From NCBI GenBank assembly GCA_051294905.1, contig CM119377.1, positions 7,936,001 to 8,000,000 on the forward strand: a stretch of 64,000 bases of DNA. Direction: 5' to 3'. Of this stretch, positions 2,785 through 55,945 are shown piece after piece. The notes beneath the pieces are model-generated. The model was not told where the DNA came from. It did no database searches and saw only the letters and a program-made list of their open reading frames with translations. Origin of the DNA: Botryllus schlosseri. Its lineage: Eukaryota. Each line of letters begins with the position of its first letter. Position 1 is the stretch's first letter. Made by a program: the position numbers and the translations under genes.

Positions 2785-3585
2785 TCATTTTTCTGACATT
2801 CCTCGCGGTTGACCAGAAAATCTCAGCCGGTTAAGCTCATCTTTCGTTTCCGCTTCAAACTTTCTGACGTCATTCATCGTGAGACCGGACCAATTATCCA
2901 TCCAGCAGTACAGCTGTCTGTGCAGCTTGTGCATGTATCGACGGAAGGCGAGATGGATCCTGCTCTCCACTGTCTCTTGCATGCCAAACCACTGGAAGTG
3001 CACGCGAACCAACTTGTAGACGCACACGTGAGGGTGCGACTGGAATTTTCCGCTTTTCATGTCTTGCAGCCAGTTGTCAGTGAGCGGCCCCAGCTTAGAT
3101 GTTTTCGGCACGAATTTCATCGGGTCTTCGGTTTCTGCATAGTCACGTGGGTCGACTTTATCATTCACCAAATCGATGAAAACAATTTCTCTCTCCTGCA
3201 ACTCTTCGGGTGTCAGGTTGTGTACGTTGTCTAGCTCACCGAAATCTTCTTTGTGCCATGACTTCACTTCAAAAACGAATTTCTCCTTCATATAATCGGG
3301 GTTTGCCATGTCGGTACTGACATACGGGTAGTCATTTTGTGATGTTTGATGCAGCTCCTCGGCTCCCTTCGGCACTAATGCCCGTATAAGCGAGGGTAGT
3401 TTAGATCGCAAATGTAATTTCTTGTAAGTGAATTGACCAGAATCACGGGGTTCGTTCACAATTATCTCAACTCCATCTCCCCCACCTGTTTCATGTTTGT
3501 TGGCTGCAGCTGTAGACCAAAGGTGAGCGATTCGGTATTGTTCCAAGCTTAGCGGTAAAACGATCCTGTATTCCTTGATAATCAT
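2785..3585 (-). CDS. Class I phosphatidylinositol transfer protein (PITP alpha/beta-like), divergent, uninterrupted CDS, 266 aa
   Basis: Starts at MIIKEYRIVLPLS (ATG 3585; the first 80 codons of the listed ORF are not homologous). Family motifs: ETGGGDGVEIIVNEP, GQFTYKKLHL, NDYPY, EDPMKF, GPL..NW, YKLV, HRQLYCWMDNW..LTMNDVRKFE. Length matches class I PITPs. Confidence 0.93.
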   Translation of the reverse strand: MIIKEYRIVLPLSLEQYRIAHLWSTAAANKHETGGGDGVEIIVNEPRDSGQFTYKKLHLRSKLPSLIRALVPKGAEELHQTSQNDYPYVSTDMANPDYMKEKFVFEVKSWHKEDFGELDNVHNLTPEELQEREIVFIDLVNDKVDPRDYAETEDPMKFVPKTSKLGPLTDNWLQDMKSGKFQSHPHVCVYKLVRVHFQWFGMQETVESRIHLAFRRYMHKLHRQLYCWMDNWSGLTMNDVRKFEAETKDELNRLRFSGQPRGMSEK

Positions 3586-4969
3586 TTTTTTAATGCCGAG
3601 TACTTCAGATTGCGTAATGTAATGATGACTGTCCGAATGAAAGATTTCATGAATGTCAAGCAGCTGGAAATTATTATGAAAGCATACCCAATACCCATAT
3701 ACTCTTCCGCAAATGTGGATTTGTATAAATGTTCTATCACTTCGAAAACGTGCGATAACGAGTACCAATACATACAAAATGTCATCACGATTACTGACGA
3801 CTAAATTTAGCACATAATGGGCCAAATAACCTACATCCTGAAGTTTGGAATCGTAATAAAACTTGCATGAAGATCGCTGATGGCTCGTCGATCGACATTG
3901 AATATAAGGGGTGGTAAAATAAGCTTGTCCTCCTTTTAAAGGGAGTGTTGGTAACGATCACGCTTCTGCGCACTCATCTGTGAACTTTTTAAATATTCAT
4001 TAGAATCTGCCCTTGGATATCAATGGACCATTGTACCCCATCCAAATTGTTCGCATGTGCCCCACCCACTTTTTCAGAGAAAAATATAATAAAAAATTTA
4101 CAGTCAGAATCAGAATGGCATACGGGGTAACAAATACCTGCTCTGTCTAAGCGTACTAATTTCAAGTACAATTTCAAACACGATCCAGAGGTACATTGAT
4201 GTAAATTTACGCAGGTTGAAAAAATTAGGTAACTAGTCATTTTCTTACAAAGACTACGGCCCTGGCGAAATTAAACCAAGTTAGGATTACGGCTGGTAAG
4301 ACAGTGCTAAATCACCCATGCGATGCATAGGCCCGTTCTTGCTGTTGTATTTTAAAAATATTCACGATGTACCATTGTGTCCCTGTATCCACTGCGCCCA
4401 CCTTCCCCTACACCGACAATCAACATAATACGGACATTGCGAGCCGCTGTTAGGAATAACCAAAAAAGAGCAGCTCATTTTATCGAAGACCTACATCAGC
4501 AACTGAGTTGTGATGATTTGATATTTTGAAGAGCATAAAATTTTCAAATCTTCAATCGCTTATAAGCAGGAGAATTTGTGCGGTCGCGGATGTCCTTGTC
4601 GCCCGGCAGCAGCGTAAAATCTGAATACGCTAGTAAGCATACCCATTACCATATAGCCAAACGCCAGTTCGCCAAATAGTGATGGTGTCGACTTGCGTGA
4701 ATTAAAAACGTTTTAATCGCATCATGGTAGTGCTTGTGGTTCTCTTACGAGCTAGCATGTTATTGACCGGGAATATGACCGCGGGCTGGTTCTCACCCAA
4801 ATTTCTACAGTCAATGTGATACATCACTCTGTTCTTTGTTAAGTTTATGCCATCGCCCGGATTCGGAAAACTAGAAAAATTCAAGCTTTTTCGAATTAGA
4901 TTAGAATTAGAATTATATAGCTATACACAGATGCAAATTGGAAGTGCTACAATTATGATGGCACTATAC

Positions 4970-21682: not shown

Positions 21683-22263
21683 GGCAGGACACTATGGTCT
21701 AACATAGCGGGACAGGATCCAGATTTTGAATTTGCTTTGAAAGTCAAATTTTAGCGGGATTTTCTCACTGATATACGATAAGTCAGCATGATTTTAGCCG
21801 GTGTCAAACACTGAGCTATATAACCTTCGGCCAATATGGTACGCCCCAAGTGGAGGAATGTATCTCATTAATAACATTTAACCAGTCACCCATTCGGCTG
21901 CGGCTTCAGGGTCTTGGCAACGCGAGAAGCGCGGTTCCGTTCGTTGAATGATAAACGTTAGTGTCATGGATATTGATATTGATTTCCACTCATTTCAACC
22001 GAACAATAAATAGCTCTAAATCTAGTAATTATTTCGGATGTTTTAGCGCATAGTGATCTCGGGCAGCGGGCAGGTAACGTAAGTATCAATTCTGTGGTTT
22101 TTAACTGCAGCTATATAAATCTTCTCCAATTCATTGAAAAAGAGATAAATTTCGAGCTCGTGTCAGGGATACACGGATTCAGCTTTTCCGAAATTAACTC
22201 ATGGCGGTCACCTTTCTAGAAAATCTTGGAAGCTTATTGTGATAGTTGATATTGAACTTGAAC

Positions 22264-23085
22264 ATGTTACGAGTAGCCCTAGTGCAGATGTCCGTCGGGA
22301 CCAACAAAACTGAAAACGTAAAAAGAGCCTGCAATATGATTAAAAAGGCGGCATCCGAAGGGGCAAAACTCATCGGCCTTCCTGAATGCTTCAACTGTCC
22401 GTACGGCACAAAATACTTCCCAGAATATGCAGAGCCAATCCCCGGCCCTTCCACCGAATCTCTGGCTCAATGTGCAAAGGAAAATAACGTCTACATACTG
22501 GCTGGTTCCATACCAGAAAAGCACGAAGACAAGCTGTTCAACACGTGCACTTTGTATAATCCTAGTGGCAGCATGATCGGGAAATATCGCAAGATACATC
22601 TTTTCGATATCGACATCCCCGGGAAAATTACATTCAAAGAATCCGAAGTTCTCAGTCCGGGAAGCGACTACTTAACCTTTGACATCGAAGGCGTCAAAAT
22701 CGGAGTGGGGATATGTTACGATTTGAGATTTGCCGAGCTTGCTCAAATTTACACCAAACTTGGATGCAAACTGATAATATATCCAGGCGCTTTCAACATG
22801 ATCACCGGACCTATGCACTGGAAGTTACTCCAACAGGGTCGGGCTGTGGATAATCAGATATATGTAGCCAGCGTTTCCCCTGCGAGAGACGAAAATGCGT
22901 CGTACATCGCTTGGGGTCATTCGATGATTGTTGATCCGTGGGGGAAAGTAGTAGAGAGCGCTGAAGCGGAAGAGAAAATCATCACGGCTGATTTGGATTT
23001 TAACAAAGTCGACGAGGTCCGATCGAATATTCCTATTTCTCACCAAAAAAGATCTGACATGTACAAATCTGCTGAAAAAGCATAA
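22264..23085 (+). CDS. NIT2: Omega-amidase NIT2 (nitrilase superfamily), uninterrupted CDS, 273 aa
   Basis: Starts MLRVALVQM. Catalytic Glu-Lys-Cys contexts LPECFNCPYG, YRKIHLFDIDIPGKITFKESE and GICYDLRF. Also AFNMITGPMHW.LLQQGRAVDNQ and YIAWGHSMIVDPWG. AATAAA lies ~20 nt after the stop. Confidence 0.96.
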   Translation: MLRVALVQMSVGTNKTENVKRACNMIKKAASEGAKLIGLPECFNCPYGTKYFPEYAEPIPGPSTESLAQCAKENNVYILAGSIPEKHEDKLFNTCTLYNPSGSMIGKYRKIHLFDIDIPGKITFKESEVLSPGSDYLTFDIEGVKIGVGICYDLRFAELAQIYTKLGCKLIIYPGAFNMITGPMHWKLLQQGRAVDNQIYVASVSPARDENASYIAWGHSMIVDPWGKVVESAEAEEKIITADLDFNKVDEVRSNIPISHQKRSDMYKSAEKA

Positions 23086-27700: not shown

Positions 27701-30700
27701 GTAGGCTGCATTGTACACATGGACCATGGAACACATTTTGGTTGTCATGGTGCAGAAATGTTTACTTTGAAAAAAGTTTTAATCTAATCTGGTGATAACT
27801 ACTATGAATGCACGGTCTCCTACCGTAATTTCCTACCAAAGCAGCAGTATAAGTTGACATTTTATACCATTTTCGGTAATACGCCTGACTGATTCATTAT
27901 ATCTGTTATAGGCTATCCTGTTTTGTGCCAGAACCTAGATGTAATAACAAACTGCAATTGAAAATTTCCAGCAAATAAATGGCGTGTCATCGGTTCTTAT
28001 TCTGTTGATTTTCACAGAAATGAAAGGCATTATACAAGACAGGCTCAAAGAGCTCGGTGTCACCTCGCCTGGTAAATTTCACGACAGCAAAACGGAAATC
28101 AGTAGACTTTACGAGGAAATTCAAGATATCGGAGGTATGCGCGATAAGAAATATATGAATGTAAATTGATCATCGTAACTGTAATCAGCGGTTCTATTAT
28201 TTTTTAAATGACGAGTCGAGTTGTCTTGCAGATAGCGAAGGCGTCGGCAGGAAATCGCAACTGGCGTTGTTCAATAAAGCAACCAACACCGTGTTCCAAT
28301 CGCACGGGCGTTTGCGATCGCCGTTTGACGGAGAAAATACAGAGTCAATTATCACCCCTTCGGAGCTTTCCATTCTCAACTGTTTGATGGAAGGAGGCTA
28401 CGTCCTCAGCTTGAAGGTTACCGATGTATTTATGGTTATTAAGTGATACAAACCAATCCAAAATTCCAAAAGATACAGCGTATAATAGTTGGTGGTTTTG
28501 CATCAAAAACTGAAAGTGGTGTGGAAATATAACCGCTTGACTACTTGAGTACTCTGAAAAAGTAGAAGTACTTAGTTACTGGCCAAGCGGCCATCTTTCA
28601 TGATGTTTGTTGGAATCGGAATATAAGTGAACTATCATTTACAACAGTAACCTGTTGAAAATATGGTCAATTACTTATTAAAAAGTATTACAGATGGAGC
28701 CAATGAAGCTTATGTAGCCCCTTTGAATACCACTGACCATCTACGATCGAGAGCTGGTGTTTTACCTCGTTGGTATTACAGCAAACCGTATTATCTTATT
28801 ATGTCAGTTGGCAAAATGAGACGACTGAATGTTTCACAGGCTCATTTCATACCTCGAATTCCGGAACTGTCTCCGTTATCGACGACTCTGGTCTATTTGA
28901 ACCTTTCGTTTAACGAACTGGTGGAGTTTCCGAGAGACGTTTTACTCTGCCGGGAACTGCAAGTGCTCAAGATGAGAAATAACCCGCTCAAAGACATTCC
29001 GCACGAAATAAGCAAGTAAGCGGTAGAACGTTTTGTGTGGTTACGTGAACTGTTACCGTGTGACGCATACTGCTTTTCGGCTGCATGGGCGCTATTGAAA
29101 TTTGAGAATGCATTTCAATCTGAGCTTTGAAAGGTTCAAGGGTTCCTTGTGCTGAGCGTGTGGGTCAAAGTTAATGGCAATTTGTTTAAAAAAGGTACAC
29201 TTTCACAGACTCAAGAACTTGCGCACTTTGATATTATCGTTCTGCTGCCTGTCTGCGTTACCGCTGTCACTGTTCTCGTTGACGAAGCTGGAATTCTTCG
29301 ACGTCTCGTACAACAAGCTCACGTTCCTCGCAAACGAAATAAAGAAATTGGAAAAGCTAAGGTACGAGTGTTGACCGCACAGTCTCTTCATTGGCAATCG
29401 TCTCGGACTGGTTCCCATAATTATCGATGTTCAGTGATCATGAGCATTTTACATTCTTAATATTGCTATCGGTCAGCCCGGGTGGGTGTTTGATGGCCTG
29501 TTCCAGGTCATTTCTATCTCATAAAATGTTGATGAATGAATTCGAGTGAACGGGAGAAATACTGTTGCATGTCGACGCTGTAAAATATTTACTTTGTAAG
29601 GAAAGGACTTTGCTCGTAACCATAGGTAGTCGATAATACTCAAGTATGCGTTGCCCACTTTGAGTACTTGGTCGTATTGTTTTTTGACTACTTCCACTTC
29701 TACCTGATAGTTTTCAAGATAAAAATACTTGCTTCTTACACTATCCAGTTTTGTAAATTAGAAAGTAGTTTTGCGGTGTTTGCATCACCTTCATGTATTG
29801 AAATGTCATAAGAGGGTGGAATGACCCCTGTATCTTCAAGGAAACTGCATATATTTTCGAAAAATGCCCCCATCATCATTTTCTACTTCCGCTTGAAGTA
29901 GTTTTTACATGTTTTGTGAATCGCTACTTCTACTTGTACTGGAGTAGAAATTTATGACGTTATTTCTACTTGAGTATCAACGCATTCTACTTTGACCATC
30001 ACTTTGCTACTTGATGAATTGTATCGAAGTGAAGATTGAAACGCATTTCATGAGGTAAATTCCTATCCCTCGTCGATAGTTCGACCCAAAAATCCCCAAC
30101 AAGTCATGTGCACTGGAGCAGGTATGGTTTTTGGTGAAGTAATGTTGTATAGCCTATGTATCTTTCGGTCACTCTTAATAGTCTTGGTCCATTTCAGATT
30201 TCTCAACGTTGAAGGAAACGAATTGGCCGGGCTTCCGTGCGGTTTGTTGAAGTTGAACCTGTTCCGAATTCGTGTGCGCAACAACTTTATGAATCCGCTG
30301 TTTTGGAAAGAGAACTCCACAAACGACCCGCAGAGGCTGACGGACATGTGTCTGGTGGTTTTGAAAGCCAAAGTCGCTCGCGAGGACTCGAAGAAAATAA
30401 AGACCTTTCCACCTGAAATCGTTCGGGCTATAAGCAAGTGAGCTTCTCGCCCTTACTGATAATAGTGTAAAAAGCATCAGAATGCAGAATTTTCAATTAC
30501 AATTTTGGACCCAATGTCCCTCTCTCAGAGGTAGTCTAAGTGGTTATCAGTCAATTCCGCACTTGTATCACTTTTCTAATGAATTCCATCATTTCAAAAC
30601 ACCACAAGACTGTGACTCCTAGTGCTAACCATGACCTGAATACTGTAATACAAAGTGTATCAAAAGATACGGCCATATTCAGTGAAACATTCTTTTCCAA

Positions 30701-31288: not shown

Positions 31289-32215
31289 CTGTAGTAACTG
31301 CACTACTACTAATAACTGTACTAGTCTTCACTGTGAACGGAATCTATATTTTCATGAATAAAGATATATTTTAGAATATTTTCTCGTTACTATGCGGTAG
31401 GAGTTGTAGCTCTTAGCTCAGTGGTGATAGCGTTAGTTGTGCAGAAAAAGGTAAACAAAGTTGTTGACAACAAAATAATTTGGGACATCCAAATCGCACT
31501 TGTAGGCTGCACCGGAAAGAAAGTTTGTGTTATTGCGATCTTGCAAATGGCTTACACAATTTACAATGTGATTCAATGAAAAGATAGGAGGGTGTTCAAG
31601 CGGCCATGTGCTGTACAGCAATATATACCTTACTGGTATTATTTGTATTTAAGTAATGGTGATATTGATAGGTCTTTTCTCTGTTGTTCCCTAGCATGAG
31701 TCCTTCTTTTGGGTTTTTCCATGGGGTTTTGTAGAGACATTGTGTGAACACTGAACAGCAATGCAGGCGTGAAGAAACCTATACAACCTTTGACACTAAA
31801 AACATGCTTGGGCCGAGACTCAAACCATATTTATAATATAATAAACATATGAAAATTGAACAGTAATGAATACACTGGTCTCCAAAGTGCTACAGTGGTT
31901 AATGCGAATATTCATTATAATGAACTTTGTAAATAAACACCTATCAGTTGAAAAAATCTAATGAGAAAGTGGCCAAAAGCAATAGCATAGTATACATTGG
32001 GATTTGGATAGCACGCACAACTAGAACATATTTATAGAAGAGCAACAACATTACACATTGAACACATAATCTCTCAAAACTGAAACATCAATTTGGTAAT
32101 CACTTGATTAGGTTAAAAACGATTTTTCACTAAAAAGTAGCAAAGCTAGTAACGATGATCTGTTGAAGGCATTAGTGCAGCATGATCACCATAGTTACTA
32201 CAGGGACCACCATAT

Positions 32216-33088
32216 CTAGCTCAAATACTGTGCAATAACTTGAGCGATCAATCCGTATTGTAGTAAAATTGGAAACGGTATCCAAAGCTTGTGTAGTTTG
32301 AATCTCGCGGCATGAGTGACAATCCCATGTCCCGGCGGCAATTTATCTGCCAAGTACAGTCTGACCTGGGAGGCTTGGAAGTAAGAGCAATTCTTACATT
32401 GAGGAAGTAATTTACCAGTAACCGACACGTATCTTTTTGGATAGTTTTCGGCCAAAGCAACAGGGGGATTATGATCGCCAAAGTAATTGACACGCACATG
32501 GGGAATGCGGTTACGAAAGTACTTGTTGAAGTATAATGCGAGAGCGTCCAAGACATTGTACCGCTTCCCACACGTGTGACACCCATACTTTTCGCCGATT
32601 TTCTGAATTTTTGCTAACCTCGGCTTGGAGACTGCGGATGTCAACGTAGGCAACGGCACGTGTTTAACAGCATACGAACCGGGGTGCAAAATATGACTGG
32701 GACATAGGTTTCTCAATCTACCTCCGAACAATTTGAAAGTGAACACGCAAAGCAGCCCGTAAGATGTGATGTTAGCTGCGGCCACGTTTACATCCGTAAA
32801 AATTAACATTGATTTCGGAGACTTGCCGATGGAGTTTTCCGTTAATGCAAACGCAACGGCCGCACAGGACGAGGCAGTGATCAGGGAGAGCATCCCGCCC
32901 ACAGGCGCAAGTCCTTTATGCGCAGTTAAATTCACACTTTTCCACACATAATTCTGCATCAATCCCAACACTGTGGGGAAAGTCAGAATTCCGGCAAGGG
33001 AAGGTAGAACGAGTTCGTTTGCCTTCCTGATGGTCTCAGCGGTAATCGCAAAGTCCTCCGCAAGCGATAATATACCTTTATTCTTCAT
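32216..33088 (-). CDS. Uncharacterised membrane protein with an HNH/His-Me-finger-like zinc-binding domain, 290 aa, uninterrupted CDS
   Basis: Three hydrophobic segments (~aa 27-48, 60-83, 102-122) are followed by GC170HTC173G, D205H206NPP and LLPQC231KNC234S, then a hydrophobic C-terminus. The ATG-to-stop ORF is intact while its tandem duplicates have decayed. Confidence 0.8.
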   Translation of the reverse strand: MKNKGILSLAEDFAITAETIRKANELVLPSLAGILTFPTVLGLMQNYVWKSVNLTAHKGLAPVGGMLSLITASSCAAVAFALTENSIGKSPKSMLIFTDVNVAAANITSYGLLCVFTFKLFGGRLRNLCPSHILHPGSYAVKHVPLPTLTSAVSKPRLAKIQKIGEKYGCHTCGKRYNVLDALALYFNKYFRNRIPHVRVNYFGDHNPPVALAENYPKRYVSVTGKLLPQCKNCSYFQASQVRLYLADKLPPGHGIVTHAARFKLHKLWIPFPILLQYGLIAQVIAQYLS

Positions 33089-34416
33089 AGCTATGTTGCC
33101 CAGTAGTGCTGCTTAGGCCTATTGCTTATGCCCTCGCTTAGACTTACATGGCTGTAATGAATGTAAAGTATGCTCTTTTATTGCAAGACTGGCAATATTA
33201 ACACGAATACAAAATGCATAACTTCTAATTGAACCATACAAGAAAATGAAGACACTTCCATCATTTTAACTACACCCCGTGATCGCGAGATGTCCGATAT
33301 TATTACATGGTGTGATAAAGATATGTAGCAGTAATGGCAAAAACCTTTCGAGATGCGACGAGTTACTTACTGGTTCCGAATTCACGGTAATCTCTACGCG
33401 CAACAAATTCACATACATTGATATATTGGCTGCCAACCACCATGTCACCACCAAGGCCTACTCTATTCCTGGAACCAGGATATCCGACAAAATCCCTGGG
33501 CAGCTAATAACAAACGATCATTTTGCACAGTGATGGTACATGCGGGTTGATTGAACGATCGTAATCCTAATACATTCGCATAAGATCTCGGGCAGTAAGA
33601 TTTAAAAGCAGCAGTGGTCACTGTAAATTGAGCAACGGAAACAACAACAGAAAGAGCCCAACTGATGCTAGCGTAGTTGAATCATAGTGGTATTGATAAC
33701 ATCAACATGGCATTCGAAGCACAGTCCAATAATATATGTGTATCGGTTAATGATTTATATCAGTCGATGGGGATTAGCAGTCAAAACGACAGAAGCAAAA
33801 AAAAAGCTGCCAATGATAACAAATCATATATACGGGAGCGGTACCAAAAGGCAGACACAATGAGATTCATGGCGAACCAAACCACGCGAGACTTTCAAAT
33901 TGAAACACAAAATGCACTAACTCCATAATTCAGGTCAGGACATCCCGAAATAGCAGTCTATCGTCTATGATACCGAGTGTGACGGGAGTGTCCCATATCG
34001 CAGCTTCCAATATGGCAGCATCGACGGATTTTGAGCAAGGATACACTTTAGAAAATGCAAAAAATATCCAGATTCTCAAACGGCAGGTCCTAGGCAACAT
34101 TCAATTCAATGGGCCAGAATAAACATAGCCGTAGAGTGGCAGTTACGAAGTTGGCGAGCAATGGAATGGGTTAAGAAGTGAGACCCCGACACCACAGAGA
34201 TTGATGAAGTGCAATAGGACCGTTCGTGAAAATATTTTAGCCGTGGTTCGAACATAGCCACATTTACAACATAAACATGCAACCATTACATATTTAGAGC
34301 GTAACGTTGTTCATTTAACGCACTTGAATACACTCAAAATACCAGAATATTGGGTCACAAAAAATAGAATGTACAGTATCACACTGCCTGCATGATTCAA
34401 TATTCCGTACAAGTCA

Positions 34417-40034: not shown

Positions 40035-40210
40035 CATCACACCTACATGTGCAGGCAAGCTTACACTATTTCAGACCATCAACCCCAACACCGAAGGGAA
40101 AGTCAGACTCTAAATCAGGAAAGGTAGAATGAGTTTGTGTGCCTTCCTGATGGTCTGGGTAGTAATCAAATTCCTTCGCACTTGACAATATACCATTATT
40201 ATTCACAGAT
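40035..40210 (-). pseudogene. Decayed 5' fragment of the 290-aa HNH-like gene (tandem duplication remnant)
   Basis: Aligns by eye to codons ~1-70 of 32216-33088 (e.g. ACCATCAGGAAGGCA, CTGACTTTCCC). The ATG has become GTG, and there are indels and a stop. Confidence 0.8.
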
Positions 40211-41453
40211 ATATTAGGCAGAAGTGCTGGTACTGTGGATTCATGCTTATATCATTGCAGAAATTTAAGAGAACATATTATAATGAATGTAAAATGAAGT
40301 AGGCAAAGCACTTTTATTGCAAGCGTGCAATTGGCCTGAATACCATATGCATTATTTTGAATTGAACCGCACAAGAAAATGCAGACATTTCCACCATTTC
40401 AATTACAGCCATTCAACACAAAACAACTGATCTTTTTACATACAGAATATTTGAGGATCAAAACGACTGAATACAACCTAATTCGGTTCATCTCTATCCG
40501 CAAAAAATTCACATACAATGATAGGCCCACTCTGGTATGCGGATCAGGTGCAAACCACTCCCAACACCATCACCTCGCCAACCCGTATTCTATGCCTGGT
40601 GACATCATAAGCGAAAAGTCAGATAGTTCACACGGGTAACAACCGTAATCCAAATGCATTCACATATTATCGTTGAAAGCTGGGGTTACAACATAGTCCC
40701 TGTAAATTGACTGACTTGCCCAGAAAGAGAACGAATGATCACAGTGCCACTATAGCAATGATGATTTATCACAATAACATCAGCATGGCAGTACAATATT
40801 CCATGTGTATCAGTGATGATTTTATCAGGCAGTTGGGATTTGCAGTCAAAACTACAGTAGTAACAAGAAATGAAAAATAATATATTCTTATTGAAATAAA
40901 CCCGAATATTTTCGACTTACATTCGTCAGGGGTAATCGTCATCAACCAGTAGACTAGTATCAACAATCGTATGCATTGTTCTTTCCAATAGTTGCTTACC
41001 CTGGATGAGTTTCATCAAAAAATATTCGGGTTTATTTCAATATGAATATGTCATGCAATTGTATATTGAAGTCCTGTGCCTGAAACAAGCTATATCAAAC
41101 TTCAAATATGTACCCGTTATGCCACCACAAAGAATATAATGCCTGTTATCCATCACTTCAAAGACACTTTGTTATTTTTTGACCCTACCGATTTCATTAC
41201 ACTTTGTGACAATGTTCTAGGAAGATCATGACTTTGGAAATGGGATATTTCCAGCAACATTAGTAGCTTTGTACTATATGTTTAGTATGCTGGGATACTG
41301 CCAATCAATGTCTCAAGGATTCCACAGTCGAAAACAGTATCGAGCCATAATTTTTGATGAAATAACTTTCGGTGGCTGGTAGAATATAATTTCAGTACTC
41401 GAAAAAATAGTCTTTTACTACTCGACTCGAATCATTGTGCCCAGCCCTATAAG

Positions 41454-42746: not shown

Positions 42747-45700
42747 TCACAAGGGAGTCTTGTGAACCGCTTTAGAAAATCGTTTCTTGTCAGAGTTTAA
42801 CAGAGCGCTCAAAGGCGAAGGTGTGGTGGCGGCCTTACGTTTGACGCCGGGCCGGAGTGCAGCGCGTTTCTTCCTTTTTCGGTTGCTCACAATGACGACT
42901 GTGATTTCTTTCGCCGGAAGACTCGCAGATCGTTCGATTTCAGATTTTCCAGTCGTTTCTACAGTACTTTTCGAATCTTTACCGCTTACCTCCGCCGAAC
43001 CCACACAGTCGATCATTCTCGACTTCACCTCACCGGAAATGCCATCATCTGCCCGCGACCTTCTTTTGCGACCCTTCTCCGCTTTAATCTTGTTCCAGGC
43101 TTGAAGAGTATGCCAATTCTTGGGGAGGAAACTGAAAAAATTTGAATCGAGGCCACCAGCGCCGAGACCGTCGCCAGGTAGGCCTATGCGACCGTCGTCG
43201 CGATGCTCGAGCTGGGTTTCAAGAGAAGATTTCACAAATTCTCTAACTGCAGTGACGCACAGATGGCCATTTGTTTCACCCCCGATGTACTTCAGCGAGC
43301 CGAGCTTGGTCTGCAAGCAGACCTCCTGAAGGTTATCCCAAAACGACTCTAGCACCTGCGAGTTGTCTAATCTATACGCTATCTTCTCGTAATTATTTTC
43401 CTCAACTTTCATATATCCGCTGCAGCTGGCACGCGTATCCACCACAGTCGCGTTCCTATGTACGTACACCATCAGACTTTCCTTCGGCATGTGCCATCCG
43501 TTGCCGATTTTGCATGTCATCGTCACCAGGCCCATGAAGAATAACTGGTGCACGCTTTCGACGAGAGAGTAGATGTACTTTCTCTTGCCGAGAAACAAGC
43601 ACTTAATGCCCGAAGGCAAGTGTCTGACCGGCGTGTGACGCTTGTCAGCATCCTGCAGATACTCTACCAACTCTTCCGTCATCCGCCAAGGTCTGTGAAA
43701 CTGGCACAGTATCGACAGCGGCATGATCGATGCCAGTTCTCCGATTTTCATCCATTTGCGGTCGACGTAAGTGTGGATAGGGGCCGATGGCAGATACCGT
43801 TTCCACGTGAATTCGGGGTCGTAAAGTTTTAACGCGTCTGCTCCCAAGTCACCATCATTAGCTGCATCGGAGAGCGGATGGGCGTATGCCAAATACCACA
43901 AAAACTCGTGTAACACACGCAGCCTTTTGAATCTCGGCTGTAAATTTGGATTTTTAGCCGCTTCTTCCTTCTTACTCATTTCACGCTTCTGCTTCCATGC
44001 CTTCTCCTGAAATTGCCTGGCGATACGACTCTCCTCGCGTGCGATGTACTCAAACCGTGCCTGATCTATCGCGGACTCGTACAGCGCGTCAGGACAGTCC
44101 AACGAGCGTATGAAATCAACAGTCTCGGTCACTTCTTTGTGCGTCAGCTGCACATGGGTGTGTTTCAGCACTCCGTTCGCTTTCATATTCTCGACAAGCC
44201 TGGTTATGGAATTGAGGCACACTTTACATGTGACGCCGTCCTTCTCGTCGGCCGTGGTGATGAGTTTTTTATCTTGGCCAATCCCGTGACTACTTTTTCC
44301 CCGTTGACGTACTCCAGAATGACATTGTGACGCTTGATGGTGCGTGCCGTCAAACCCGCGTCCCGCTTTTTCGAGTGAGCCATGTCTGACTTTGCCGTCA
44401 AATCGACGGAAGGGTTCAATTGATCGAGTCTCGAGTTCTTAGTTCCTTCCGATTTCGAAATCTCGGAGACATTTGCAGGCAGATCTCCGGCATTAGCATC
44501 CCGTGTGCACTCGTCATACTTCGTCGACAGCATAAGTTCCTGCATTTTCTTTTTGACTGCAATAAACTCCTCGCTTTTGCCGCAGTTTGCGGTCACCGTC
44601 TTGGGAAAGTACATCATAATGCGCTGCTTGCCTCGATCGATCAGCACCGCGTCCAGCACTTTCTTATGCACTAACGAGGTGATGATGTATCTCGCTTCCA
44701 ATGCACTGATACCGTCAACAAGCCGGTGCACGTCTGTCAATGACACGCCCCTTGCCACGTTTTGCTTGATAAAATCATACGCCTGGTTCAATATAGGCCT
44801 ATTGAGTGTCAGCGGCATCAAGACGAGTTCGTCGCTGTGTGCAACCGGCCCAGGGTCATCTTGTTTTTCAGCAAGGGTAACTGTCTTTTCGCACCTGCCA
44901 TGCTCAGAAATCGTGATTTCACCAGTTTTTTTCAGCATCTTATACGCAGTCTTAAAGGGTTTCGATCGTGTCTTAAATTTCTCTTTTAAAACGCCAAGGT
45001 TCATGGACTGGTTCCGGGAATTTTGCAATTCCTTCAAAATCCCCTTCCTAGCTCTGGCGTAGAGCGTCAGGGAGGTGCGCTCATACTTTTTCAAGTTCAC
45101 CAAAACCTGAGTGCAAGTGCGGGTAGTTTTGTACGAGTGGTGCGTCTTTGTAACCAGCCCGAGAACGTGCAGCATCTTCACGATGGCCTGGTAGGCCTTG
45201 TTGCGGAAATTCAATTTGGCCAGCCTCGACATGATCACGCCTTCCCACCTGGAACGCGCGATCAACTCCAACACGCAATAACAATGATCGCTTACATGCT
45301 CCAAAAGCACGCGACTAAAATTTCCCGATAGCATCGCGTGTTCTCTATCGGATTGAGACGCGACAATGACTATCTGCTGTCGGCCGTACTTAGCGAAACT
45401 CGTGGTCAAATCTAAGGATTGTTCAACAATCTCATCTTTGATATCAACCCTCTCGTTATAATTCGAGCAAGATCCGCGTATGCCCTCATCATCCGTTTCT
45501 ACCGCACTGCTACTGTACACTTCCACTATTGTATCGAGCTCGTCAGGAGCTGTGGCTATAGGCACTTGTTCCTCATCTAGACTTTTAGTCCGTTCAAATA
45601 GCTGTGGTTCGTCACGAGGTTTCGGTATTTGTACGACTCCAAGTGGCGCGTGATCCAGTATGAATTTCCCCAAGTACTCGTGCAGTTTGTCGGGAACCGT

Positions 45701-45800
45701 GTACGGAAGCTTTGGCTTCCGATGATTCATGCGCAGGCAATGTAATGCCGTCCAGGCCCTCGAGCGCAATTTCTTTGACGCAAATTTGTTTGATGTCCAT
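42747..45800 (-). pseudogene. GTF3C1: GTF3C1 copy 2: C-terminally truncated, with two frameshifts
   Basis: ATG at 45800 (MDIKQICVKEIALEG). An 11-nt deletion near 45736 and a 1-nt deletion in the T run at 44265-44270 split it over the listed ORFs 45612-46088, 44204-45835 and 42747-44222. It ends RFSKAVHKTPL*. Confidence 0.85.
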
Positions 45801-46159
45801 CGCACAAACACATACCACAGGCCTAAATTCAACAACTAAATTTATCTGTATATAAATAATTGTTAGAATGCAAACAAAATAATAAAATTCAACAATCGTT
45901 GAACACAGTGCCAGAAATGACTTGGATTTGGAAGTGGATTGAAACAGGCTCAACAGGGTTATGCAACTCGTCAACAAATATCTTCGATAATCGTGTTCCC
46001 GTATATACGTAACATCGGGAAAATACAGAATAGTAACACTTTTACGAAGTCTGTACCATGAATAACTTAATAGCCAACAGGCCTTCAACTTGGCTACGTT
46101 AAGGATGACAAAATACGGTACCGGTAACCCTAGAGTTACGGTCTTAGCAAACAGGACAT

Positions 46160-46380
46160 GGCACCAATCAGGGACAGAATTACACCTACAGGAGCGAGTC
46201 TCCTATGCGCAGGTAAATTTACACTATTCCACACAAAATCCAGCCTCACCCCAACACCAAAGGGAAATTCAGACTCAAGTCAGGAGAGTTAGAATGAGTT
46301 CGTGTGCCTTCCTGATAGTCTCGAACGCAATCAAATTCCTTCGCACACGACAATATATCATTATTATTCACAGATATCTT
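46160..46380 (-). pseudogene. Second decayed 5' fragment of the 290-aa HNH-like gene
   Basis: Aligns to codons ~1-72 (..FVWNSVNLPAHRRLAPVGVILSLIG versus YVWKSVNLTAHKGLAPVGGMLSLIT). The ATG is lost. Confidence 0.8.
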
Positions 46381-47527
46381 AGGCGGAAATGATGGTACTG
46401 TGGATTTATGCTTGTATCATTGCATAAATTTTAGAAAACAAAGTAGGTAAAGCACTTTTATTGCAAGCGTGCAATTGACCTGAATATAATATGCATAATT
46501 TTGAACAGAACCATAAAAGGACAAGCGGACATTTCCATCATTTCAACTAGAGCCATTCATCACAAAACGACCGATATTTTTTCGTTGTTTACAAAAAATT
46601 TTGAGGATCAAAATGACTGAATACATCCCAATTCAGGTAATCTCTATCCGCAAAAAATACAAATGAAATGATACTCCGGCAGGCAGATCAGATGAGAACC
46701 AGTCCCAACACCATCACCTCGCCAACCCTTATTCTATTCCTGGTAATATCATAAGCGACAAGTCCCTATCATTTTGCATCGAGTCAAATAGTATGATCCG
46801 GTTAACCACCATAATCCAAACGTATTCACATATTATCTCAAGCCACAAGTTTTGAAATCTGCAGTTGAAACAAAGTCACTGTAAATTACCTGACTTGATC
46901 AGAAAGAGCCAAAATGATTACAGTTGAAATAATCGTGGCACAATAGCAGTGATGAGTTATCACAATAGCATCAACATGACAGTACATTGATACATAGTAT
47001 CAGTGATGATTTAATCAGGCAATCAAAACGACATGAGTACCAAAAAATGAATAATATATTGATATTGACATAAACCCGAAGATTTTCAGCTTACATTCGT
47101 CAGGGGCAGGGGTAATCGTCATCAACTAGTAGACTAGTATCAACAATCGTATACAATGTTCTTTCCAATAGTTGCTGACGATAACCCTCGACGAGTTTCA
47201 GTCAAAAATATTTGTGTTTATTTCAATATGAATATGTTCTGCAATTGTGTAGTGAAGTCCTGTACCTCCGACAAGCTCCCCGAGTAACATAAAAAGGTGA
47301 TAATAATAAACACTCAAATACATGAGAGATACCAAAAGGCAGAAACAGTGAGATTCATCGCAGACTCTGGGAAACTTTCGAATTGAAACGCACCGAAAAC
47401 GATATTTCACAATAAAATGCACAAATTCCATAGCGCTGGTTGGGATGTCGCACATTGCACCGAAAAATACTTCAAGTAACTACCGCATTCCTTTGCGTAT
47501 AACTGACGCAGGGTCAAAGCCAGTCCG

Positions 47528-52711: not shown

Positions 52712-55402
52712 TCAACTTCGATCAGTGGGAGTAAAACCGTGGTTCGAACAGAACAAGGGGATGATCTCGATGCAGTTGAGATATTGGCAAATTTTACAGT
52801 CGGTCAGCGGGCTGATGTAGAAAAACACAATCAAGAGCGCAAATATCGCGCAGAACACCAAAAAGCATGTGATCACTTGAATTCGCTTCCTCCGACGGTC
52901 AAAGTCGCTGAACGTGATGTAAGGAAGGAACACAAACGACAGGAGCAGCCCGGACAGGAACCCGAAAATGTGCGCAAAGTTATCGATCCAAGGAAGCAAC
53001 CCAAACACAAACAGAACCAGAGCGATCACGGACAGTTTTCCCAGGGCTTTGCCAGGCGACTTCAACAGCTGCCAGCTTTGCAACACTTCCACAAAGAGAC
53101 AAGCCAAAATACCGAAATGGGACCCGGCCGGCCCGACGTCGGCGCGGTACGGCAAGAAGATAGCGGAAGCCAGGTTTCCGCTGATCCCGCTGAGCATGTA
53201 GATCAATGATATCCTCAGCCAGCCGGCTAATTTCTCCATATCCTTGAGCACGGTCATTTGGAACGCGACTGATATGGCACAGTGGACCACGCCCGCGTGT
53301 AGCAAAATGGAAAGCCACAGACGATAGATCTGATCGGGCGACTGCGCTAGCCTGAACTCGATGAGCCCGCAAGTGTCCTGCATGCAATTCACTTGAGAAC
53401 ACAGAGTTGCTTCAGAGTGGAAGACACCTCTTTTATTATCGCAGTATTCCTTTGTTACAATTTCGCACTTTGCCTCCTGCCCGATACAACAAGGGTGACC
53501 CACCAGATCGCAGGACATATGCTGCAGCGTGGTGTCGCTCGTATTTTTCGCGTTGGCGCAGATCGGCCACTTTGTGATGTCATCGGGCCATTCATCCGCT
53601 TGACCGAGCACGTAATCCGCACACAAGTTTGGATCTTGACCACACACAGAACCCGACTGACGGATTTCGACTTGACCGTCCGGGTTTGTGTACCCGGGCG
53701 GGTCGAATTCGGGGTCCGGCCATTTGATCCACGTAGCGAACAAAGAGCTGCACTCGTCTTCGTTGGTTTGAATGCATCCGGAATTGTCTTTTCGCACGCA
53801 GCAAGCCGACTGATTCTCGGCCTTCATTTCTTCCAGCAGCAAAGAATGAAGTTTCGGGTCTTGCCGCATGCACGGCGAGTACTTGGCGCCCAGATGAATC
53901 AAGTCTTTTGTACGCGGGCCAATCCAGAAATTTTGCGGCTCCGAAAACACTTCGCTCACTCTGGACAGGGACTTTTTGGTGGTCGTGAAGCTCTCTTGAA
54001 AATTCGCGAAACCGATCGGAGCCACACCGTAGACAGCCAGCGATATGATGCACACGACAATGTGCACGAACGATATCCAGTACGAAAAATACGGCCTGTG
54101 ATCGTCGAAAGTGTTTAGCTGGTTTTCGACGTAGCTGTTCAAGCGCTTCCTAGTCAGACGCCTGTTAAGCCAGTTGCCCACCAAGCCTTTTCCATATTCT
54201 CGCTTTTCTTTACGACGAAAAGCCACCGAAAGCATCCTCTTCACGCCTGGCTTACGGGCGTCTTTTTGAGCCTGCGCCGGTTTTTCGGGGTACTGCTGTC
54301 GCGGCTGTATGGCGGGGCAGGATTCTTCAACAGGCGACGCGACGATAAAAACCTCATCCGGAAACGACTCTCCTTCTAAAATCGTGGGCATCTGGTCCCG
54401 CATAAACTCTGTCGTGTCACCTTCCTCCGCCTCCGCAGGGACAGCCTCTTCGGCCAAACTCTCCATCGGATAGCTTCCCCGTTCCATCGACTTTCCGACC
54501 AAATCATTCATGATGGACGTACCTTTCACCATCGCGCTCACAACTTTCCAGCTCATCTTGGCCACGGAGTCCTTGCGGTTCCGGTAATCTTGTCTTCGCA
54601 AAGTGGTTGTAGAGAACTGCGCACCGTATCTGGAGGCGTTACCGCCTAGCGATCGGTTTCCCGGGGTGACGGGTGTTCGCGGCGGGGTGCTGATAGCCAA
54701 CGGGCCCCCGGCCATCGAATTGCCTGCGTTCATCGAATAACTTTCGGATATATCCGGGGTGCCAATATGGCGTTTTCCGCCACGTCTCGCTAAAGGATCA
54801 AAAATTTGAGGGGGAGCTTGCGGCGATCCGGAAAAACTATGAAACGTTTCTCTTTCTTCTCTCTCTTCCATTTCTTGTTGCGCTTGCGGTTTCAATTTCC
54901 CATATTTCATGCTGCAGTATCTCAGATGACGCAACCGCCATTTGTTCTGGTCTTCGTCGCAGTTTTTCCCGATCCCAACAAAACTCTCGGTGGCTTCCAT
55001 CATACGACGCGACCCGCTTCTAAGCACGGCCGCACGCTGCAAGAGAGAATTTTGTCTCTGAAACGTAGACCGTTTATGCCTTGAGCCGTCGGTGTTTCGT
55101 TTAGAACCGTGCATCGTGGCACTGAAGCTTCGGTGGTACGCTTTCTGCGCGGACACACTCTGAACGTGAGCGGACCGCGGCATCGGCACGGGATCTGGCG
55201 ATATTGTGTCTTCCGGTATGCGTGATGCCAGTCTGGCTTTCGGTATGTCCAGCTTCAAGTTATGTATGTTTCTTGACGGCCTACGTTCAGAACCTGGATC
55301 TGGGTCTGACAGGGGCTCTGTGACGGGTGCTGCCGCACTGCCAGTGTTATCTTCTGTGTCGTCAGACCGGCCAGGGTTTCCATCTTGATCATCTTCCATC
55401 AT
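52712..55402 (-). CDS. RHBDF1: Inactive rhomboid protein (iRhom, RHBDF1/2-like), ~896 aa, uninterrupted CDS
   Basis: Long Ser/Arg-rich cytosolic N-terminus, then HRPYFSYWISFVH and QNFWIGP...LIHLGAKYSPCMRQD. Cys-rich iRhom homology domain (SACCVRKDNSGCIQT, SGSVCGQDP, GHPCCIG). Rhomboid core QIYRLWLSILLHAG, DMEKLAGWLRISLIY and GPAGSHFG (the GP signature of iRhoms), then WIDNFAHIFG. Likely start MMEDDQ at 55402. Confidence 0.96.
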   Translation of the reverse strand: MMEDDQDGNPGRSDDTEDNTGSAAAPVTEPLSDPDPGSERRPSRNIHNLKLDIPKARLASRIPEDTISPDPVPMPRSAHVQSVSAQKAYHRSFSATMHGSKRNTDGSRHKRSTFQRQNSLLQRAAVLRSGSRRMMEATESFVGIGKNCDEDQNKWRLRHLRYCSMKYGKLKPQAQQEMEEREERETFHSFSGSPQAPPQIFDPLARRGGKRHIGTPDISESYSMNAGNSMAGGPLAISTPPRTPVTPGNRSLGGNASRYGAQFSTTTLRRQDYRNRKDSVAKMSWKVVSAMVKGTSIMNDLVGKSMERGSYPMESLAEEAVPAEAEEGDTTEFMRDQMPTILEGESFPDEVFIVASPVEESCPAIQPRQQYPEKPAQAQKDARKPGVKRMLSVAFRRKEKREYGKGLVGNWLNRRLTRKRLNSYVENQLNTFDDHRPYFSYWISFVHIVVCIISLAVYGVAPIGFANFQESFTTTKKSLSRVSEVFSEPQNFWIGPRTKDLIHLGAKYSPCMRQDPKLHSLLLEEMKAENQSACCVRKDNSGCIQTNEDECSSLFATWIKWPDPEFDPPGYTNPDGQVEIRQSGSVCGQDPNLCADYVLGQADEWPDDITKWPICANAKNTSDTTLQHMSCDLVGHPCCIGQEAKCEIVTKEYCDNKRGVFHSEATLCSQVNCMQDTCGLIEFRLAQSPDQIYRLWLSILLHAGVVHCAISVAFQMTVLKDMEKLAGWLRISLIYMLSGISGNLASAIFLPYRADVGPAGSHFGILACLFVEVLQSWQLLKSPGKALGKLSVIALVLFVFGLLPWIDNFAHIFGFLSGLLLSFVFLPYITFSDFDRRRKRIQVITCFLVFCAIFALLIVFFYISPLTDCKICQYLNCIEIIPLFCSNHGFTPTDRS

Positions 55403-55945
55403 GAGTTCAATTTCAACTAGGCAGCTATTAAAAATACCGAAAATCTGAATAGAAAATGTGTTTAATGATATATTAGGCACCCGGCACCGTATTCAGTAAG
55501 AGCCTGTATGATCAACTGACTTCTGAAATTGAACATCAAACAGATAGCCTAATATAGATCAAAATGTGATACAAAAATCGTGATAAAGCGGACTATATAT
55601 TTTCCCACATGCCATGTTGATTGTAATGACCGTTATTTCTAGGAGATCCTACCACCAAATTCAATCGCCATGTTTGACACAGGGTTATCATGGCATTTGA
55701 AAACAATTCGAAAACATTGCAGCAAACAATACGTTTATATTGCAAATTGATCCCACTCGAAGCTTTTCGAGTGGCCCTTTTCAGAAGTGACCGCCAGTAA
55801 ATGAGGGTAAACAAGCTCGAAATATTGAAAGAATTTTGTCGTTGTGATGTAATAATGACAAGTACACAGAGTCGTGAACGGGAGTAAACAACGCACGGTT
55901 ACAGTACAACGCACACAAAATCAGCTGTACTATCTATCTCGTCCT

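Follow-up and report, generated by a model that had tools for sequence, protein, structure and literature searches.

The window analysed here is a stretch of 64,000 nucleotides (nt) from the genome of the tunicate Botryllus schlosseri (GenBank assembly GCA_051294905.1, contig CM119377.1, positions 7,936,001 to 8,000,000). On its minus strand lies a gene for a protein of 290 amino acids (aa), called TM-HNH here, in which a domain of predicted HNH fold is attached to a multi-pass membrane anchor formed by transmembrane (TM) helices. The protein is a member of an unnamed family, conserved across many eukaryotes, that forms a multi-pass-membrane branch within the HNH superfamily and carries the active-site signature DH…S..Q. 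The gene, the parts of its product and the neighbouring open reading frames (ORFs) are collected in Table 1.

The reading frame of TM-HNH is intact from its ATG to its stop, and it extends for only 8 further codons upstream of the ATG before a stop is met. When the genome was searched with the protein, a 100% match with zero stops was returned at the locus itself. Raw RNA-seq reads of the same species (run X22) cover the coding sequence at 1-5x depth. Further, a contig of run X1, a small run that is probably a transcriptome, comprises the coding sequence with flanks of about 65 nt on its upstream and about 800 nt on its downstream side; it is colinear with the genome across the coding sequence, which is therefore without an intron. 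Twelve positions that vary within the species are listed in the coding sequence. Nine of them are synonymous, and the three replacements (V27I, Y245D and P252S) are all found at non-conserved positions, a pattern that suggests purifying selection. In a comparison with one ortholog (67% identical), the nonsynonymous rate (dN) was 0.23 and the synonymous rate (dS) was saturated, and the dN/dS of the gene rests on this single, saturated comparison. The proposal that 32216-33088 is not a gene was rejected on account of the RNA reads, the colinear 1.7-kb contig and the mostly synonymous variants. TM-HNH is a real gene under constraint.

Table 1. Features of the window. Positions count from its first letter, and residue numbers are those of the TM-HNH protein. 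pLDDT, predicted local distance difference test; A2, a family alignment described in the text.
Feature	Position	Strand	Basis and remarks
Complete single-exon coding sequence of TM-HNH, 290 aa	32216..33088	-	ORF list, sequence, genome search
TM helix 1, residues ~26-47	32948..33013	-	Hydropathy; within model helix 4-49; G33, F37 and L41 conserved
TM helix 2, residues ~61-87	32828..32908	-	Hydropathy; model helix 61-87; G65 in 93% of members
TM helix 3, residues ~100-121, moderately hydrophobic only	32726..32791	-	Hydropathy; model helix 100-120
Juxtamembrane linker GGR..(L)PS....PG(A/S)(F/Y)A, residues 122-153	32630..32725	-	Conservation in alignment A2
Predicted HNH (beta-beta-alpha-metal) domain, residues ~155-250	32339..32626	-	AlphaFold models, pLDDT 89-91; structural and profile comparison
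GCHTCG, residues 169-174, predicted first zinc knuckle (C170, C173)	32567..32584	-	Sequence; in nearly all family matches
DHNPP, residues 205-209, predicted general-base His206 ending strand beta-1	32462..32476	-	Sequence; model strand 203-207
PQCKNCS..Q (PQCKNCS 229-235), predicted second zinc knuckle (C231, C234) with Ser235 and Gln238	32375..32404	-	Sequence; model helix 232-246
C-terminal hydrophobic tail, residues 268-290	32219..32287	-	Hydropathy, peak only ~1.2; model helices 272-277 and 280-289
Colinear contig over TM-HNH, 1725 nt, depth 27	31400..33153	-	Run X1, guessed to be RNA (probable transcriptome)
GTF3C1 (TFIIIC220), full length, 1824 aa	34417-39891	-	ORF; B-block or winged-helix Pfam match
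Decayed copy of TM-HNH 5' end and upstream region, residues ~15-60	40038..40410	-	tblastn 59% identity, 2 stops; blastn ~70%
GTF3C1 as two overlapping ORFs, 491 and 543 aa	42747-45835	-	B-block or winged-helix Pfam match
Second decayed copy of TM-HNH 5' end and upstream region, residues ~37-75	46151..46581	-	tblastn 59%; blastn 70% over 445 nt
GTF3C1, half length, 1029 aa	47528-50617	-	B-block or winged-helix Pfam match
Phosphatidylinositol transfer protein	2785-3825	-	Single long ORF
CN-hydrolase/nitrilase-like protein	22246-23085	+	Single long ORF
iRhom (inactive rhomboid) protein	52712-55480	-	Single long ORF

The C-terminal domain was modelled with AlphaFold, both within the whole protein and by itself. 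The whole-protein model, which was built with the family alignment, has a pLDDT of 90.6 and a predicted template modelling score (pTM) of 0.85, and the pLDDT of the domain-only model is 89. The modelled core begins with a strand (203-207) whose end is formed by D205-H206; a short helix, a second strand (225-230) and a helix (232-246) that starts at C231/C234 follow. The first CxxC lies in a loop ahead of this beta-beta-alpha core. This order, together with the placement of the CxxC pairs, is that of an HNH (beta-beta-alpha-metal) fold with a Cys4 zinc site. As modelled, the domain is thus an HNH/His-Me finger whose core is a beta-hairpin and an alpha-helix. C170, C173, C231 and C234 are kept in nearly all matches even before any selection on motifs, and these four residues are predicted to form the structural zinc site.

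Comparison with known structures points in the same direction. When the domain was ranked by VIA-align, HNH nucleases made up the top of the list at low Z, and the list included McrA, TagI, Cap5, several Cas9 and IscB HNH domains, and HNH proteins of retrons and Cascade. The family profile aligned with the Gme HNH endonuclease (4h9d) at E=0.12, with both CxxC pairs, the DH and the Pro in register. In the AlphaFold database, the neighbours of the isolated domain are annotated as 'HNH endonuclease', as an 'RHS repeat-associated core domain' protein, of which the C-terminal tip is the matching part (28% identity, E 5.6e-4), and as an 'intein C-terminal splicing' (Hint) protein. A preliminary description of this DNA had read the protein as a zinc-stabilised HNH/His-Me finger, and the models, the VIA-align ranking and the 4h9d register bear this out; the motif positions that it gave (CxxC at 170-173, DHxPP at 205-209 and CxxC-S at 231-235) are all exact.

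A Foldseek search of the PDB matched neither model at E<=0.001, and its weak best rows were Cascade-HNH entries. The AlphaFold Swiss-Prot library gave no match to the models, so that no reviewed protein is close in fold. Similarly, nothing significant was found in a sequence search of the PDB with the single sequence or the whole-protein profile, and PADLOC found nothing for the protein. The Pfam and NCBIfam scan of the query returned no family apart from one sub-threshold C2H2 zinc-finger match. When 109 members were scanned against curated models, an HNH-named family was absent among the 25 of 62 families listed (E<=1); the single known His-Me family among those listed was NinG, matched by one member at E 0.069. 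The best match to any HNH model, HNH_5 at E 0.0021, is below threshold and belongs to one choanoflagellate member that was scanned separately. Individual members also matched HNH-endonuclease families of PHROG weakly (best E 0.0035), and none of the Pfam HNH models was reached by the family at its curated threshold.

The sequences of alignments A2 and A3 were picked for carrying the three motifs, and motif invariance in them is therefore partly by construction. The residues were thus recounted in 143 raw matches that have GCHxCG and then a second CxxC, the DH being ignored in the selection. A DH stands between the CxxC pairs in 142 of the 143, as DHxPP in 139 and as DHxP with another residue in 3. 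Directly behind the second CxxC, 133 of 140 have Ser, 4 have Ala, 2 have Cys and 1 has Phe, and the position three residues further on, which is Gln238 here, is Gln in 140/140. Judged from these sequences, the motifs are not a matter of chance, and the preliminary description was right both in calling the catalytic DH intact and in pointing to Ser in place of the usual Asn. The sole exception to the DH is a Styela clava paralog (P0005, LOC120333226), whose branch is long and in which the inter-strand segment is missing too. It retains both CxxC pairs as well as the membrane part, and is probably a derived, catalytically dead copy.

Set against 4h9d, the protein departs from the classical HNH motif. 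Ser235 takes the place of the Asn behind the second CxxC, which is the metal ligand in that enzyme family. The middle structural Asn is not conserved; this protein has Lys226, and the family consensus is a Gln one position earlier. The invariant Gln238, which lies one helical turn past Ser235, would be the prime candidate for a replacement metal ligand. In the tunicate proteins, about 31 residues are inserted between the first CxxC and the DH, against about 10 in most members, and this insert is modelled at lower confidence as a helix (179-192).

On balance, TM-HNH is probably a phosphodiesterase of the HNH type that is tethered to a membrane and cleaves nucleic acid on the cytosolic or matrix side of that membrane. 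The protein would consist of three TM helices, a juxtamembrane linker, a Zn(Cys)4 HNH domain and a short hydrophobic tail, and its predicted activity is that of a divalent-metal-dependent phosphodiesterase on DNA or RNA at the membrane surface. In such a mechanism, His206 would act as the general base, Asp205 and Gln238 (and/or Ser235) would bind the catalytic metal, and C170, C173, C231 and C234 would bind the structural zinc.

The same residues can be read in another way, namely that the His-Me finger is catalytically altered and that the protein is a membrane-tethered zinc module which binds nucleic acid or protein as a sensor, tether or adaptor. The Ser that stands for a metal-binding Asn or His in 133/140 homologs, the loss of the middle Asn and the want of a significant match to any curated HNH model would all agree with this. 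Inactive His-Me fingers also exist, such as the MH1 domain of SMAD and the eukaryotic teneurin versions of Tox-GHH, which appear in the tables of PMC5714182 and PMC3482391. However, an Asp-His pair ends strand beta-1 in all but one of the 143 distant eukaryotic homologs and also in the bacterial relatives, and the invariant Gln one turn past the Ser could hold the metal in its place. The DH-less Styela copy is on a long branch, as would be expected of a derived copy under relaxed constraint. We therefore consider a non-catalytic role rather unlikely and give preference to an active nuclease.

The membrane part was delineated by a Kyte-Doolittle scan and by the secondary structure of the AlphaFold models. 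Both agree with the three N-terminal hydrophobic segments and the hydrophobic tail of the preliminary description, which had also taken the protein to be membrane-anchored, as is indeed found. In the linker, S131 and G137 are invariant in A2 and P130 is nearly always present, and none of these residues was used as a selection criterion. The tail is modelled as a kinked helix, which probably rests on the membrane or dips into it. On the side of the HNH domain, loop 1 and the stretch that follows helix 3 carry, averaged over the 109 members, 2.1 and 1.7 Lys/Arg and 0.07 and 0.23 Asp/Glu, respectively, while the N-terminal flank and loop 2 on the opposite side are about neutral in charge. By the positive-inside rule, this places the HNH domain on the cytoplasmic side or, should the anchor sit in the inner membrane of an organelle, on the matrix or stromal side. 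From these charges we infer that the domain faces the cytosol, the nucleoplasm or an organelle matrix. Such an orientation fits with a Cys4 zinc site and with access to nucleic acid. There is no obvious presequence in the Botryllus protein, and the apicomplexan orthologs have long N-terminal extensions.

C-terminal extensions of at least 100 residues are also seen in many family members. In the sponge ortholog P0019 (Corticium candelabrum, 350 aa), an acidic extension of about 100 residues ends in a hydrophobic, tail-anchor-like helix.

Alternatively, the protein might be an active His-Me phosphodiesterase that works on a phosphodiester other than nucleic acid, embedded in or near the membrane; lipid head groups and nucleotide-linked carriers are examples. 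The rigid packing of the catalytic domain on the three-helix bundle (whole-protein pTM 0.85) would suit a substrate of this kind, as would linker residues (S131, G137 and P130) conserved to the level of the active site, a tail that folds back towards the membrane, and the lack of any additional DNA-binding domain. On the other hand, the structures that come nearest among those solved belong to DNA nucleases, and in the bacterial relatives the domain occurs without a membrane part. To our knowledge, all characterised enzymatic members of the HNH superfamily act on nucleic acids. A membrane phosphodiester thus appears to be an improbable substrate, and cleavage of DNA or RNA by TM-HNH is the preferred reading here as well.

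The family is a large one. A word-indexed search returned 5 close relatives, including 2 from Styela clava. When 1.8 billion cluster representatives were searched exhaustively with phmmer, 332 matches were obtained at E<=1e-3 and 81 at E<=1e-10, and a profile of the C-terminal domain found 949 proteins. The nearest named relatives are ascidian proteins (Styela clava, Ciona and Clavelina), in keeping with the animal genome assumed in the preliminary description. All named members are eukaryotic save one protein from a bacterial metagenome-assembled genome (MAG), and they are labelled 'uncharacterized', 'hypothetical' or 'transmembrane protein'. Among deuterostomes, members occur in tunicates (Ciona, Clavelina, Styela), a cephalochordate (Branchiostoma), a hemichordate (Ptychodera) and echinoderms (Asterias, Patiria, Acanthaster, Apostichopus, Lytechinus, Strongylocentrotus, Diadema, Anneissia, Antedon, Amphiura). 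Others come from cnidarians (Nematostella, Desmophyllum), a sponge (Corticium), choanoflagellates (Stephanoeca, Salpingoeca), diatoms (Nitzschia, Pseudo-nitzschia), an oomycete (Lagenidium) and apicomplexans (Babesia, Besnoitia, Toxoplasma TGME49_278170, Neospora, Cystoisospora, Cyclospora, Eimeria). Further clusters come from the ESM Atlas, with Cnidaria, Bacillariophyta and Chlorophyta as their most frequent phyla. Vertebrates, ecdysozoans, fungi and land plants are not represented among the named matches listed, which does not by itself demonstrate a loss. No entry for the family exists in Pfam, NCBIfam or Swiss-Prot, and no literature on it was found by searching for the motif, for membrane-anchored HNH proteins, for TGME49_278170 or in hyperLOPIT supplements.

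In the oomycete Lagenidium giganteum, one protein (P0152, 1561 aa) has the TM-HNH module near its N-terminus (about 129-280) and a HECT ubiquitin-ligase domain at its C-terminus. This may be a genuine fusion, or two gene models may have been merged.

A maximum-likelihood tree of the domain was made from 32 sequences. In it, the tunicates are monophyletic (100/100) and nested, with moderate support (86/84), in a group of echinoderms, the hemichordate and amphioxus, which argues for vertical inheritance of the gene in deuterostomes. The cnidarians and the choanoflagellates each form a separate pairing. The preliminary description had thought a horizontally acquired origin possible. Neither the tree nor the spread of the family across eukaryotic supergroups supports a horizontal acquisition specific to animals.

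The named bacterial member is P0215 (Bryobacteraceae MAG, L001:556-1341), a protein of 261 aa with two tandem GCHxCG..DHxPP..PQCxxC domains and no TM helix; its gene adjoins one for a sigma-54 activator. A match was found in 3 of 301 sampled genomes of its phylum. Going by these sequences, the bacterial relatives of the domain appear to be rare and devoid of TM helices. Their branches are too long for them to be placed in the tree, and hence for an ancient transfer to be given a direction.

Eukaryotic HNH nucleases are mostly soluble nuclear or organellar enzymes, or else selfish elements. The closest kind among known enzymes are the small zinc HNH nucleases of His-Me group 1, namely the Gme HNH nicking endonuclease (4h9d), the HNH protein of phage GVE2 (5h0o) and PF01844. 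From these, the TM-HNH family differs in the Ser that replaces Asn or His after the second CxxC, the invariant Gln at +3, the DHxPP signature, a variable insert of 15-50 residues that separates the two strands, and the fusion of the domain to a three-helix membrane anchor. The HNH domain of human ZRANB3 (5mkw) is only 14% identical to that of TM-HNH. ZRANB3 is a soluble nuclear remodeller of replication forks with SNF2, NZF and PIP/APIM modules and without a membrane anchor.

Known nucleases that are held at membranes offer analogies of function. TREX1 is a mammalian DNase of the cytosol that is tail-anchored in the endoplasmic reticulum; it is a DEDDh exonuclease with a single C-terminal anchor and a vertebrate distribution. 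It resembles TM-HNH, by functional analogy only, as a nuclease on the cytosolic face of an internal membrane, and its fold is unrelated. EXOG, which is held at the mitochondrial inner membrane, is likewise a membrane-held eukaryotic His-Me nuclease, and EXOG/EndoG are listed among the His-Me nucleases in PMC5714182. The likeness is again one of analogy only. EXOG and EndoG, both mitochondrial, belong to a different His-Me family, Endonuclease_NS, whose scaffold is a large beta-sheet and which lacks the Cys4 zinc, and EXOG has a single N-terminal anchor. Neither gave a sequence match or a top-ranked structural match to the TM-HNH protein.

What such an enzyme would do in the cell can be proposed only tentatively. 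TM-HNH might stand for an ancient eukaryotic family of membrane-built HNH nucleases. On the cytosolic or matrix side of one particular organelle membrane, these would break down or process DNA or RNA, as in the clearance of foreign or misplaced DNA or in the turnover of organelle genomes. The roles that the preliminary description put forward, in an innate defence or an organellar DNA/RNA turnover pathway and with an anchor in the ER or an organelle, are likewise speculative. The family is, in any case, a tractable candidate enzyme family, and Toxoplasma (TGME49_278170), Ciona and Nematostella provide members that are genetically accessible. Were it active, eukaryotic cell biology would gain a nucleic-acid-degrading activity bound to a membrane. 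If the absence of the family from vertebrates, ecdysozoans, fungi and land plants is real, unrelated enzymes such as EXOG and TREX1 may do the same job, and one would have to ask what replaced the enzyme in vertebrates.

The surroundings of the gene also bear on its history. The genome holds one intact copy of TM-HNH and two decayed fragments, each of which lies directly downstream of a GTF3C1 paralog. A sample of a related tunicate shows GTF3C1 followed by TM-HNH in the identical order and strand. The decayed 5' pieces behind the paralogs, together with this conserved order, indicate that a unit of GTF3C1 plus TM-HNH was triplicated, and the sequences imply that the HNH gene would have survived in one unit only. 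The split of the GTF3C1 copy at 42747-45835 could reflect a frameshift or decay. Apparently intronless genes with a single ORF seem to be frequent in the window, as in the last three rows of Table 1, and the intronless state of TM-HNH is therefore no mark of foreign origin.

A recent acquisition of a bacterial toxin, or of a selfish homing-endonuclease gene, by this tunicate genome would be suggested by the missing introns, by the bacterial relatives of the domain and by the RHS tip and the Hint protein among its structural neighbours. These two neighbours, and the signature carried twice by P0215, make up the likeness to the HNH tips of bacterial polymorphic toxins (Tox-HNH and relatives; Zhang et al. 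2012, PMC3482391). Yet the eukaryotic proteins have no secretion, repeat or trafficking module and no linked immunity gene, they stand in a eukaryotic gene context, and the TM-HNH protein gave no match to the named Tox-HNH Pfam families. Unlike such toxins, TM-HNH is held by three TM helices and is vertically inherited among deuterostomes. The preliminary description had mentioned a GCHxCG..DHxPP..PxCxxCS variant in bacterial toxin tips. This holds in part, as P0215 carries the signature and an RHS tip is a neighbour, while P0215 itself is a stand-alone protein and not an RHS toxin. Orthologs in deuterostomes, cnidarians, a sponge, choanoflagellates and protists, and the tunicates being monophyletic within a deuterostome group, contradict a recent transfer, which was rejected along with a selfish element. 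The synteny with GTF3C1, the neighbours that are also single long ORFs, the single intact copy beside two decayed fragments and the purifying selection seen in the variants likewise speak against it. A recent arrival is therefore very unlikely.

A tRNA scan close to the 3' end of TM-HNH found none. Further downstream of the gene, more than 20 RNA-seq reads of run X22 join 30587-30612 to 31567-31575, skipping about 956 nt, and the same join is present in a contig of run X4, a run that was guessed to be RNA. The ends of the join are non-canonical (TG..AA), and many loose ends are found at 30587 and 31595. The join could be due to a repeat family or to an unusual splice.
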